This document shows positions 29,445 to 38,378 of a stretch of DNA of 64,000 bases, in pieces. The first letter of the stretch is position 1, and each line of letters starts with the position of its first letter. The notes under the pieces were generated by a model that was not told the origin of the DNA, searched no databases, and worked only from the letters and a program-made list of their open reading frames with translations. The stretch spans positions 3,519,861 to 3,583,860 of the forward strand of contig CATNEN010000031.1 of NCBI GenBank assembly GCA_950097015.1, written 5' to 3'. The position numbers and the translations under genes are program-made. The stretch is from Macrostomum hystrix (Eukaryota > Animalia > Platyhelminthes).

Positions 29445-32400
29445 TTAGGCGAGGATTGTCGCGGCTGCTGGAAATAAACATGCTGCTGTTGCTGCTGCTG
29501 CTGTTGTCGATGGACGATTCTGAGACGGCGGCGGGCGCCATTCGGCTTCTAAATCGGCATGAAATTTCGACAAGGAGGGAGCAACCGGGCCGAACAAGAT
29601 AAAGCAGCAGTTGGCGCAGCCGCTGCCGTGATCGAACGGGTTGATCAGGTCCGGGTTGCGCTGCGTATTGTACAGGTCCTTGATCTGATTCCGGGAAGGG
29701 GGTGGCTACGTTAGGTTGCTAATGGCAAGTGATTAAACTATTTTACACCTAGTATAACCTACATGAAAACTCAGACTCAAACTCAGATTCTAACAGAATC
29801 CAGACATTTTAATTAGACTTTTTCTACCTGAGAATGTTAATTAATTGTACCTGAGAATGTTACTTAATTGTACCTGAGAATGTTACTTAATTGTACCTGA
29901 GAATTTTACTTAATTGTACCTGAGAATGTTACTTAATTGTACCTGAGAATGTTACTTAATTGTACCTGAGAATGTTACTTAATTGTATCTGAGAATGTTA
30001 CTTAATTGTACCTGAGAATGTTACTTAATTGTAACTGAGAATGTTACTTAATTGTACCTGAGAATGTTACTTAATTGTACCTGAGAATGTTACTTAATTG
30101 TACCTGAGAATGTTACTTAATTGTACCTGAGAATGTTACTTAATTGTACCTGAGAATGTTACTTAATTGTACCTGAGAATGTTACTTAATTGTACCTGAG
30201 AATGTTACTTAATTGTACCTGAGAATGTTACTTAATTGTACCTGAGAATGGTAACTCAATTGTACCTGAGAATGTTACTTAATTGTACCTGAGAATGTTA
30301 CTTAATTGTACCTGAGAATGTTACTTAATTGTACCTGAGAATGTTACTTAATTGTACCTGAGAATGTTACTTAATTGTACCTGAGAATGGTAACTCAATT
30401 GTACCTGAGAATGTTACTTAATTGTACCTGAGAATGGTAACTCAATTGTACCTGAGAATGGTAACTCAATTGTACCTGAGAATGTGATCTAATTCTACCA
30501 GAGAATCCAAAGAATGTGGTCCAATTCTGTGTAAAGTAGCGAACTCACATCCTCATTGGTTGACGTCTCGCGGCAGATCAGCATGGTGTGAAAGCCGCCC
30601 AGTCCAATCACGGAGAATATAGAGAAAAATGCCACAATAATGACGGGCAGAGTGCAATGAGAATGATTGGCGAGGGGCCTAGGCCGAGTCAAGGAAACAT
30701 TTTGTGCGGAATAGCCCGGTAAATTTAAACAAAGTTAAAAATTATAAACAAAAAAACATTTTAGAAAAAAGGATATCTGGTAGGCGACTCTCGAAGCACT
30801 TGGACGAAGTCGCCGCTCCTTTGAGAATTCACTGAAATTGTGGGGTTTCAGTGCTAATCACCAGCAAGAAGACAGGGTCTGTGGGATAATCTGTAGCCAC
30901 TGGAAGTCTACTAAATTTGTGAGTAATATTATTAATAATTGCAGGAGGGCTGCTGGCAATGGCACATCATTTAGTGACACTTGACCCGCAGCCAGTGAGG
31001 AGGCAATTCTGCCCATTTCGCTGACTCCTGAGCACACACGCACACAAACACTGTACGCAGGCAAACGCTCACACAGGTGTGTACATCGATCTGCCCTGAC
31101 TTTCTCATCGTCAGGCAGTGTACACTCCCACTGTGCCTTGGAGGTTGGCCCTCAAGGGCGTAAATTGCAAGACATGCCCCCAAGCCTTCTCTCCGCGGCT
31201 GCGCCCCAAATAAATGTGGCCTCGCCGCGGAATCGAACTTAGGGACCTTGGCGAGAGAGGTAAATAAACGCGTTAACCGCTCTGCCACCGAACCACTGAA
31301 TTTGTGAAATTTTTAATGAGTTAAAAATGACTCACAAATAACCAGATTCAGGCAGCCGAACACCATGATGTAGACGCAATAGACAGACAGGCTAACTAGG
31401 AACAGGTAGAAATATCTGTAGTTTCTCTTTCCAACACAGTTGCCAACCCACGGGCAGTGATGATCGAATCTGTCCACGCAGTTGTCGCATGTTGAGCAGT
31501 GACTGGCCCTGGGCGGCCGCCACAATTTGCAGGTCTGACAGAATTTCAGTTTGAACAGTCGGCCGTTAATGCGAATGTCGCGCAGAGTCTCGTAGTTGGG
31601 CACCGTGCTGTGCGAGGCTGCGGGCAGTGGACTGTCTGGGATAATTAAGGGAATCCTGGGGATTGGGGAGGGATGGGATAATCAAGGGAATACTGGGGAT
31701 TGGGGAGGGATGGGATAATTAAGGGAATCCTGGGGATTAGGGAGGGATGGGATAATTAAGTCAATCCTGGGGATTGGGGAGGGATAGGATAATTAAGACG
31801 ATCCTGGGGATTGGGGAGGGATGGGATAATTAAGACAATCCTGGGGATTGGGGAGGGATGGGATAATTAAGACAATCCTGGGGATTGGGAAGGGATGGGA
31901 TAATTAAGGGAATCCTGGGGATTGGGCGGGATAGGATAATTAAGGGAATCCTGGGGATTGGGAAGGGACGGGATAATTAAGGGAATCTTGGGGATTGGGG
32001 AGTGATGGGATATTTAAGGGAATCCTGGGGATCGGGATGGGATGGGATAATTAAGGGAATCCTGGGGATTGGGCGGGATAGGATAATTAAGGGAATCCTG
32101 GGGATTGGGAAGGGACGGGATAATTAAGGGAATCTTGGGGATTGGGGAGTGATGGGATATTTAAGGGAATCCTGGGGATCGGGATGGGATGGGATGGGAT
32201 GAGAAATGGAATACTGGGGACTGTAATCGGATTGGATGAGACAGGAAATCCCAGTAAACTGGGGTGGGATGAGATGTTAAAGGGAACCACTGGTAGTTGA
32301 TGGAAAGGAGCATCTAAAACAGGGAAGTGTGAATAAAAACGGAAGCCTTAAGGTAGAAGGATGTGGATAATGAAGGCAACCAATGGGAGTGGGGTCACAC

Positions 32401-32758
32401 TGAAAATTATAATGAAATAAACCAAGCACATTCAGGCAAGGAAGAACTTTATCGCACCCATCTCGGCCTCCATCCAGGCGGCCTCATCCGGCCCAGCTCT
32501 GGGAATGATGCCTGGATCGCTGAGTGTAGTGCGCAGTAGGCAGCCAAGCACGAAGCCAAATTGCAGCACAGCAAATACTGGCACTGCTGGCGAGAGATTC
32601 ACTGCTAAGAAGCGACAGTCGAAAGCGAAGAAAAGGCCGGAAAACACCACAACCAAGCCAAGGGTGAGGTAGAAAACAGACAGGTTTCTGGCGCACACGC
32701 AGCGACCATTGCAGCAGATCCAGCTTTTACCTTTGTAATGCTCCCAGCGCTTTGGCAT
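29445..32758 (-). CDS. ZDHHC14: DHHC palmitoyltransferase, ZDHHC9/14/18 (approximated) subfamily; 5 coding exons
   Basis: Exons 32758-32458, 31635-31336, 30831-30777, 30651-30549 and 29684-29445 join in frame (999 nt). Motifs: [62 protein letters not shown] and NPF. Intron 3 is AT-AC. The paralog assignment and exact C-terminus are uncertain. Confidence 0.93.
29820..30490 (-). repeat. 23-bp minisatellite (~29 copies) in ZDHHC intron 4
   Basis: Plus-strand unit ttaattgtacctgagaatgttac. Confidence 0.96.
30652..30776 (-). other. U12-type AT-AC intron (125 nt) in ZDHHC
   Basis: 5' splice site ATATCCTTTT at 30776, branch TTCCTTGAC at 30696-30688, 3' end ttgcAC at 30652. Removal gives an in-frame [15 protein letters not shown], colinear with SPASVLEAVVCFFS of vertebrate ZDHHC14 as I recall it. 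Confidence 0.9.
30860..31295 (-). mobile_element. tRNA-derived SINE family B, near full-length copy in ZDHHC intron 2
   Basis: Minus strand: A-box ggtggcagagcggttaacgcg and B-box-like aagttcgattcc. The body (gcaatttacgc, ccaacctcc.aggcacagtg, ctgcctgacgatgagaaagtcag, gcgaaatggg.agaattgcctcctc) matches 59.1-59.5 kb and 41.3-41.45 kb. Confidence 0.85.
31638..32200 (-). repeat. 37-bp minisatellite (~15 copies) in ZDHHC intron 1
   Basis: Plus-strand unit gggataattaagggaatcctggggattggggagggat. Confidence 0.94.
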
Positions 32759-37300: not shown

Positions 37301-38378
37301 TCCAGATCCTTCAGCTGGCCTCTGTTACTCTAGATCTTCAGCTGGCCTCTGTTACTCCAGATCCTTCAGCTGGCCTCTGTTACTCCAGATCCTTCAGCTG
37401 GCCTCTGTTACTCCAGATCCTTCAGCTGGCCTCTGTTACTCCAGATCCTTCAGCTGGCCTCTGTTACTCCAGATCCTTCAGCTGGCCTCTGTTACTCCAG
37501 ATCCTTCAGCTGGCCTCTGTTACTCCAGATCCTTCAGCTGGCCTCTGTTACTCCACCCCCTGATCCTTGATCCTTCAGCTGGCCTCTGTTACTCCACCCC
37601 CTGATCCTTGATCCTTCAGCTGGCCTCTGTTACTCCACCCCCTGATCCTTGATCCTTCAGCTGGCCTGTTACTCCACCCCCTGATCCTTGATCCTTCAGC
37701 TGGCCTCTGTTACTCCACCCCCTGATCCTTCAGCTGGCCTCTGTTACTCCACCCCCTGATCCCTGATCCTTCAGCTGGCCTCTCAGATATCAATACAAAT
37801 CACATGTCCCACCGCAGGCAAGTCTCAACAGAGGAGGGTGAACGCAAGTCTAAGGAGCTGAATGTGATGTTTATTGAGACCAGCGCCAAGGCGGGCTACA
37901 ATGTTAAGCAGGTTTGAATGCGTGGGCTGATGAATTTCCTATTCATTGTGACTCATTAGCTGATTCGCTCTCGCCGCAACGCCCGCAGCTGTTTCGACGC
38001 ATCGCCGCGGAGCTGCTCGTCAATGAGAAGCCGCCAGCGAAGCAGGAGAACGATTGTATCCTTTTTACAGTCTGTGTAGGGGATAGTGCCTGTTTGTGTT
38101 TTAAATTATTGGATATTGCCTGTGACAAGTTCTGTTTGATACTAACGGATAGTGACAATTTCTGTTTGATAGTAACGGATAGTGACAATTTCTGTTTGAT
38201 ACTAAGTTGGTGAAATCGTAAATATATCGGTATAGTTGGGACATTGACAGATCATTATACAAAAACGTTTCCTTAACCAACCTTGGTTGTCGCCTGTCAC
38301 TACCCGACAGTGATTGAAGTGAAGCTGAAGGACACGCCACAGGACGCGGAGAATCAGTCCAAAGGATGCTGGTGCTGA
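34369..38378 (+). CDS. RAB6: Ras-related protein Rab6 (8 coding exons, 209 aa)
   Basis: Exons 34369-34438, 36504-36562, 36706-36759, 36840-36945, 37058-37169, 37818-37911, 37989-38055 and 38311-38378 (630 nt, in frame). Translation [71 protein letters not shown] and a C-terminal CWC prenylation motif. Confidence 0.97.
34632..34927 (+). mobile_element. Non-autonomous Merlin (IS1595/ISXO2-like) DNA transposon derivative in Rab6 intron 1
   Basis: ~33-bp TIRs ggcgatttcttagtttcccgc(g/a)ttaaattattt with an 8-bp TSD tccattct (34624-34631 and 34928-34935). Internal remnant [32 protein letters not shown] resembles the Merlin transposase C-terminus. Confidence 0.88.
37205..37785 (+). repeat. 27-28-bp minisatellite with expanding variants in Rab6 intron 5
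   Basis: Unit ctgttactccagatccttcagctggcct; later copies gain caccccctgatccttga. Confidence 0.93.
38056..38310 (+). other. U12-type GT-AG intron (255 nt), last intron of Rab6
   Basis: 5' splice site GTATCCTTTT at 38056, perfect branch TTTCCTTAAC at 38268-38277, and first downstream AG at 38309-38310. Removal gives in-frame ENDLIEVKLK...CWC-stop. Confidence 0.92.

Follow-up and report, generated by a model that had tools for sequence, protein, structure and literature searches.

How far downstream of its branch point can a minor (U12-type) intron place its 3′ splice site? The question is raised by a 64,000-nucleotide (nt) stretch of the genome of the flatworm Macrostomum hystrix (contig CATNEN010000031.1, positions 3,519,861 to 3,583,860; the whole stretch is called the window below), in which two divergently transcribed genes, a ZDHHC palmitoyltransferase gene and Rab6, each contain an intron with U12-type signals and an unusually distant 3′ end. 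Canonically, the branch adenosine of a minor intron lies 10–20 nt from the 3′ splice site, with an optimum of 11–13 nt (PMC8199999). A short, tightly limited distance of this kind counts as a hallmark of minor introns and is built into classifiers. It also figures in arguments on how the minor spliceosome, which has neither U2AF65 nor a pyrimidine tract to rely on, finds the 3′ splice site. An earlier reading of the window, made from the sequence only, had placed the branch adenosine ~37 nt from the terminal AC in ZDHHC and ~34 nt from the AG in Rab6, and had proposed a lineage-specific change in spacing. The two distances are exactly 37 and 34 nt, and 18 of 18 well-supported U12-type introns in a genome-wide sample have spacings of 18–48 nt. 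We consider it probable that long spacing is the norm for the minor introns of this flatworm, the narrow 10–20 nt rule having been replaced by a broad window of ~18–48 nt that is searched linearly from the branch.

Two U12-type introns with distant 3′ splice sites

The AT-AC intron of ZDHHC begins with the 5′ splice site ATATCCTT at 30776..30769 on the minus strand (in its longer form from 30776, ATATCCTTTT) and contains the branch box TCCTTGAC at 30695..30688. It ends at the first AC past this box, at 30653..30652, which gives a spacing of 37 nt from the branch adenosine at 30689 to the last intron base. The GT-AG intron of Rab6, on the plus strand, begins with GTATCCTT at 38056-38063 (longer form from 38056, GTATCCTTTT), contains the branch box TCCTTAAC at 38270-38277 with the branch adenosine at 38276, and ends at the first AG past the box, at 38309-38310, with a spacing of 34 nt. 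Each intron thus uses the first downstream dinucleotide of its own type, as the sequence-only reading had noted. No nearer branch-like motif with fewer than three mismatches was found in the ZDHHC spacer, and none with fewer than four in the Rab6 spacer.

Both introns match RTATCCTT directly at the exon end and carry a TCCTTRAY branch box complementary to the 5′ region of the U12 small nuclear RNA (snRNA), together with terminal dinucleotides of the U12 class. Single 5′ splice-site and branch-box 8-mers were not more frequent in the window than expected by chance; the motifs of the two introns are significant because they are paired, in the right order and flush with exon ends. Judged by these sequence signals, both are genuine U12-type (minor-spliceosome) introns and ordinary members of the minor-intron set of this genome. 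They violate the 10–20 nt constraint typical of U12-type introns; this short spacing is treated as a characteristic constraint and not as a class-defining signal, so the two introns are a variant of the U12-type class.

The 3′ splice sites were placed with the help of the host proteins. Exons were translated and searched singly, never as a joined model, and junctions were judged by coordinate arithmetic. The DHHC exon of the minus-strand gene matches named ZDHHC9/14/18 proteins, which identifies the gene as a ZDHHC9/14/18-like palmitoyltransferase. The exon downstream of the AT-AC intron (30549..30651) aligns to residues 225-261 of human ZDHHC9 (PDB 8hf3) and covers positions 98-131 of the DHHC Pfam profile, and the HMMER alignment to 8hf3 begins at the residue that matches the AC-site junction. 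In exon-by-exon local alignments, the exon pair joined at the AC site is collinear within ~1 residue for most of 13 homologues. A PDB search with the 23-residue upstream piece gave nothing useful, a search with the DHHC-exon open reading frame (ORF) for close relatives or transcript-derived fragments returned none above 79% identity, and marine-metagenome contigs with ZDHHC homologues had no intron at this position. The plus-strand gene was identified as Rab6 by its exon 37060-37167, which matches Rab-6A/6B in the PDB with E ~1e-15, against 1e-5 or worse for other Rabs. With the AG at 34 nt, the reading frame runs on through the C-terminal CXC motif to the stop codon, and the sole alternative in-frame AG, at 43 nt, would make the spacing longer. 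PDB searches with both C-terminal pieces of Rab6 gave nothing useful, this tail being covered by no PDB chain.

Spacing of U12-type introns across the genome

The contig is not human, and a protein encoded elsewhere in the genome has its closest match in Macrostomum lignano (65% identity). We scanned the assembly (220 Mb, 42 contigs) for RTATCCTTT followed within 40-500 nt by TTCCTTRAC, with the reversed pattern as a control. The strict scan gave 17 matches against 13 in the control, and a relaxed branch box (VTCCTTRAC) gave 7 against 11, which is noise. Only strict matches flush with coding exons were kept (n = 13), and a near-identical copy of the ZDHHC–Rab6 locus on contig C13 was left out. 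Two real introns (L021 and L022) were rescued by hand from the relaxed list. We further included a second U12-type Cav intron and, through searches with exon queries, the homologous introns of one Cav paralogue. The resulting core sample comprised 18 well-supported U12-type introns, 10 of them AT-AC and 8 GT-AG, with 3′ splice sites set by reading frame and homology. All 13 strict matches that were kept start with RTATCCTTT and 12 of them with RTATCCTTTT; variant 5′ splice sites occur in introns derived from paralogues (GTATCCTC in L045 and GTATCCTTCC in L052).

From the branch adenosine to the last intron base, the 18 spacings were 18, 19, 25, 26, 27, 28, 29, 31, 32, 32, 33, 33, 34, 37, 40, 41, 48 and 48 nt (median 32, mean 32.3), with none at 10-17 nt. 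Long introns (1.1-2.2 kb) showed spacings like those of short ones. The sequence-only reading had named beforehand a genome-wide peak at 10–20 nt as the outcome that would speak against it; the distribution has no such peak, and the proposed lineage-specific shift is borne out in this sample. The two introns of the window might nevertheless have been chance outliers of a canonical distribution, and classifier search windows, which place the branch at -55 to -5 or -45 to -5, do allow spacings up to ~40-45 nt (PMC7367187; bioRxiv 10.1101/2020.10.12.336362). Yet spacings below 18 nt occur in none of the 18 well-supported introns and in none of four weaker ones, and if 20% of canonical introns had spacings of at least 18 nt, all 18 would reach this length with a probability of ~3e-13, which makes this explanation exceedingly improbable.

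The four less certain introns all have spacings of at least 23 nt: 23 or 26 nt in prospero, whose 5′ splice site GTATCCTTTT lies 2.2 kb upstream; 25 or 29 nt in L010; at least 31 nt in L006; and 29 nt, measured from an imperfect branch box, in the SLC12 paralogue L052. Among paralogues, spacings were 40 versus 32 and 48 versus 31 nt in Cav genes, 37, 29 and 32 nt in ZDHHC genes, 41 versus 28 nt in RRM genes and 26 versus 19 nt in coiled-coil genes. These spacings differ by 3-17 nt, and therefore no new fixed ruler or optimum is apparent.

U2-type introns were found at homologous sites of PLC paralogues and of three Cav paralogues, and these add nothing to the sample. The three further Cav-type genes (L048, C39:2327757; L049, C33:3383016; L050, C2:1143057) have a U2-type acceptor where two Cav paralogues have AT-AC introns. 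One PLC gene (L031-L034; C1:5857001-5897000, minus strand, at ~17.7-19.5 kb of the reverse complement) contains a tandem pair of homologous exons that end in the U12-type 5′ splice sites GTATCCTTTC and GTATCCTTTT and have one branch box and one 3′ splice site in common, a layout that suggests mutually exclusive exons. A further PLC copy (L055; C7:7730796-7733972) encodes a Y-domain exon 100% identical in protein sequence to the C1 copy, preceded at the same position by a ~95-nt intron with a pyrimidine-rich U2-type 3′ end; it may represent a U12-to-U2 conversion or a rearranged copy.

Choice of the 3′ splice site

Long spacings would be spurious if the 3′ splice sites had been misassigned, the true acceptors lying 10-15 nt after the branch boxes and the proteins carrying extra residues. 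The one competing site in the ZDHHC intron is of this kind, an in-frame TAG at +10, but its use would insert 9 residues that are absent from homologues. In the remainder of the sample, no AG occurs at 8-17 nt in any GT-AG intron. AAC trinucleotides at 12, 12, 14, 17 and 18 nt are skipped in four AT-AC introns, and none of these would continue the reading frame of the conserved protein downstream. At the junctions used, Pfam profile positions meet without gap or overlap (SLC12 AA_permease 63|64|65; TMEM107 79|80|81), and the ZDHHC junction is collinear with homologues to the extent described above. In the PI-PLC-Y, Ion_trans and Fer2 profiles, the downstream exons start where expected; in two RRM genes, the upstream exon reaches as far as RRM_1 position 44, shortly before the RNP1 motif ends. 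Misassignment is accordingly very hard to sustain as an explanation.

The spacers themselves suggest how the site is chosen. In the eight GT-AG introns, no AG was observed in 208 positions from +8 to the 3′ splice site, against 11.7 expected (P ~6e-6); past the bases right next to the branch, the first AG encountered is thus in every case the acceptor, and these introns fit a first-AG rule. In the ten AT-AC introns, pyrimidine-AC is depleted in the spacers, with 1 observed against 3.9 expected. In a neutral model that takes the first site from 9-12 nt onwards, all 18 introns reach at least 18 nt with a probability of 0.0003-0.04, and therefore the lower bound seems to have been raised as well as the upper bound relaxed.

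The sequence-only reading had suggested a scanning or pyrimidine-assisted mode of recognition. The scanning part agrees with the first-AG behaviour of the GT-AG introns; the U2AF-like pyrimidine tract does not hold up. Such a tract, bound by U2AF or a similar factor, could in principle bridge a long spacer. The two spacers of the window are moderately C/T-rich, as had been noted (63% and 67% pyrimidine), and L004 and L013 carry runs of 7-8 pyrimidines. These two values are, however, at the upper end of the range of the 18 spacers, whose overall pyrimidine fraction (0.53; 0.54 in the last 15 nt) equals that of the 100 nt of intron upstream of the boxes. Several long spacers are purine- or A-rich, with pyrimidine fractions of 0.34 in CAV2, 0.38 in L001 and 0.27 in L007. 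We rejected this explanation since the spacers are no richer in pyrimidines than the upstream intron, and regard it as distinctly unlikely.

RNA hairpins offer another way to bring the branch effectively within canonical reach of the acceptor. In Rab6, ZDHHC and L013 the branch box is followed by short palindromes, and the predicted fold of the CAV2 spacer is more stable than that of shuffled sequence (z = -3.2). Over the 18 spacers, the mean folding z against shuffled sequence is -0.07, and 7 of the 18 lack any predicted structure. With spacer folding equal to that of shuffled sequence, this explanation was likewise rejected and appears very improbable.

Splicing machinery

Rfam models identified a single U12 snRNA gene (C25:4892929-4893089; 85.7 bits) as well as U11 (70.4 bits) and U6atac (47.5 bits), all above their cut-offs. 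The first 32 nt of the U12 snRNA are identical to the Rfam consensus at 31 positions, and this includes the branch-pairing stretch; the divergence of U12 snRNA that had been envisaged as an accompaniment of the spacing change is not seen in this stretch. The Rfam model did not find U4atac among 50 scored candidates, which is not evidence of its absence; U4atac may simply be divergent.

Among 26 CCCH zinc-finger matches, one is a canonical U2AF1-type finger (L074). Distinct from it is a ZRSR2 orthologue encoded by a single open frame of 371 codons (L086:2221-3333, minus strand, corresponding to C39:8694720-8695832), with two zinc fingers (ZnF) in the architecture ZnF1-UHM-ZnF2 and an RS-rich tail. 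In the PDB it is matched best by U2AF23, along the UHM and both zinc fingers, and its named relatives are all ZRSR1 or ZRSR2. Two differences from six further ZRSR2 proteins of animals are shared with the M. lignano orthologue: a stretch of ~20 residues is deleted between ZnF1 and the core of the UHM, and one residue is inserted in ZnF2. The locus contains no U12-type intron. ZRSR involvement had been suggested from the sequence alone; ZRSR2 is present and divergent in the genus, and its sequence makes it a lead, one candidate factor for the spacing shift, by correlation only.

A probable change of the distance rule and the evidence against it

In the reading that we favour, the distance rule for 3′ splice-site choice would have been altered from 10–20 nt (optimum 11–13) to ~18–48 nt. 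Within this range, GT-AG introns would use the first AG and AT-AC introns usually the first pyrimidine-AC, and selection appears to be a linear search from the branch without the aid of a pyrimidine tract or hairpin. We infer this search mechanism and, behind it, a change in a protein factor, for which the divergent ZRSR2 would be one candidate.

Several points weigh against an altered rule. The AT-AC part of it is less clean because AC as such is not depleted in the AT-AC spacers (8 observed, 8.9 expected) and because the L007 intron uses an AAC at 19 nt. A prospero paralogue (L091, L097; C3:6732016-6738600) has TTCCTTTAAT 12 nt before an AG, ahead of its homeo-prospero exon. No other near-consensus box was seen at canonical spacing, and the 5 kb upstream of this one yielded no U12-type 5′ splice site. 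Motifs, reading frames and homology served to place the branch points and some of the 3′ splice sites. The sample amounts to ~20 introns, several of which are paralogue pairs, and the motif scan reached only branch boxes within 500 nt of the 5′ splice site. Finally, 11 nt ahead of the AG of the TMEM107 intron (L005) stands TCCCTAAC, which differs from the branch motif at one position.

This last motif would suit an arrangement in which the box binds the U12 small nuclear ribonucleoprotein while the branch forms at a cryptic, degenerate site nearer the acceptor, or in which a second weak branch site is used. L021 likewise has GGCTAAC 12 nt from its AG, and an orthologous intron of Paragonimus westermani works with the degenerate element TTTTTAAC. 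Nevertheless, in 17 of the 18 introns the best 8-mer with an A at 8-17 nt has at least three mismatches, as happens with random sequence 43% of the time, and a U12 snRNA that retains the canonical pairing sequence should pick the perfect box. We regard cryptic branching as unlikely.

An altered distance rule would have practical and mechanistic consequences. In these genomes, minor introns will be under-called or wrongly placed by classifiers and annotation pipelines that give weight to a 10-15 nt window. A lineage with consensus motifs, an unaltered U12 snRNA and a spacing of ~32 nt is also a natural experiment on the source of the constraint, be it ZRSR2, SF3b contacts or the geometry of the second step, and M. 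lignano is a tractable laboratory flatworm. A bolder version, in which the genus Macrostomum lost the short-distance ruler of the minor spliceosome and uses a first-AG/first-YAC search over ~18-50 nt enabled by co-evolution of ZRSR2, is tentative and, in our judgement, rather doubtful. If true, this would be the first known case of a lineage altering the spacing constraint and leaving its motifs as they were, and would point to the seat of the constraint.

Layout of the ZDHHC–Rab6 locus

The coordinates of the two introns, their exons and the intergenic spacer are collected in Table 1. The start codons of ZDHHC (32758) and Rab6 (34370) face apart with ~1.6 kb between them, in agreement with the distance given by the sequence-only reading, and the sequence between them may act as a promoter region. 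Minisatellite arrays occupy window positions 31640-32200, in the ZDHHC intron after exon 1 (unit ~60 nt, rich in GGGATTGGGGA), and 37190-37790, in a Rab6 intron (unit ~35-45 nt, TCAGCTGGCCTCTGTTACTCCAGATCC); similar arrays are present at 25.7-29.3 kb of the window. The second, near-identical divergent ZDHHC–Rab6 locus, on the 920-kb contig C13 (L008, L009; C13:139867-140757 and 151779-152890), has the same two U12-type introns with identical spacers, and in its Rab6 intron the part ahead of the branch box is 90 nt longer. This locus could be a haplotig or a recent duplicate.

Table 1. Features of the ZDHHC–Rab6 locus (window positions) and the orthologous intron of Paragonimus westermani
Feature	Position	Strand	Description
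ZDHHC first coding exon	32432..32758	-	ORF; ATG at 32758
ZDHHC exon 5′ of the AT-AC intron	30777..30831	-	55 nt, ends in phase 2; frame, splice sites, collinear with homologues
U12-type AT-AC intron, ZDHHC	30652..30776	-	125 nt; ATATCCTT at 5′ end, terminal AC
ZDHHC branch box TTCCTTGAC	30688..30696	-	branch A 30689; 37 nt from last intron base
ZDHHC exon 3′ of the AT-AC intron	30549..30651	-	transmembrane segment through TNED motif
AT-rich spacer between the divergent ZDHHC and Rab6 start codons	32759..34369	.	~1.6 kb; putative promoter function
Rab6 penultimate coding exon	37989..38055	+	ends in phase 1; frame
U12-type GT-AG intron, Rab6	38056..38310	+	255 nt; GTATCCTT at 5′ end, first AG after box
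Rab6 branch box TTCCTTAAC	38269..38277	+	branch A 38276; 34 nt from last intron base
Rab6 last coding exon	38311..38378	+	ends with CXC prenylation motif and TGA
Paragonimus westermani orthologous AT-AC intron	L035, 5′ splice site 8531, AC 8773-8774	n/a	sequence comparison

Comparison with known systems

The introns described here have much in common with the canonical U12-type introns of vertebrates, plants and insects: the RTATCCTT(T) 5′ splice site, the TTCCTTRAC box, AT-AC or GT-AG termini, the lack of a polypyrimidine tract, conserved host genes (Cav channels, PLC, SLC12, prospero) and genes for U11, U12 and U6atac. They differ in spacing, with a range of 18–48 nt and no sampled intron in the canonical window. 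In the major spliceosome, 3′ splice-site choice from U2-type branch points involves selection of the first AG and AG-exclusion zones. The introns of M. hystrix resemble this system in the range of spacing (~18-40 nt), in use of the first AG and in the strong depletion of AG between branch and 3′ splice site, and differ from it in having U12-type signals, AT-AC termini in 10 of 18 cases and no pyrimidine tract.

Within flatworms, the ZDHHC9/14/18 gene of Paragonimus westermani (L035) has an intron at the same position and in the same phase, with the same 5′ splice site ATATCCTTTT and the same AC terminus. In contrast to the M. hystrix intron, its best and only branch-like element, TTTTTAAC, has a canonical spacing of 13 nt; on this single case, long spacing is therefore not pan-flatworm. 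Flatworm spacing is unmentioned in the pan-eukaryotic minor-intron surveys consulted, and among the papers searched we found none that reports such a shift or links Macrostomum with U12 spacing. In Physarum polycephalum, the branch motif and the U12 snRNA co-evolved and the branch adenosine still lies 9-12 nt from the 3′ splice site (bioRxiv 10.1101/2020.10.12.336362). Both cases are lineage-specific departures from a minor-intron feature long held invariant, and they are opposite in kind: Physarum changed the motif (TTTGA) and its U12 snRNA and kept the spacing, whereas in M. hystrix the motif and the U12 snRNA were kept and the spacing changed.

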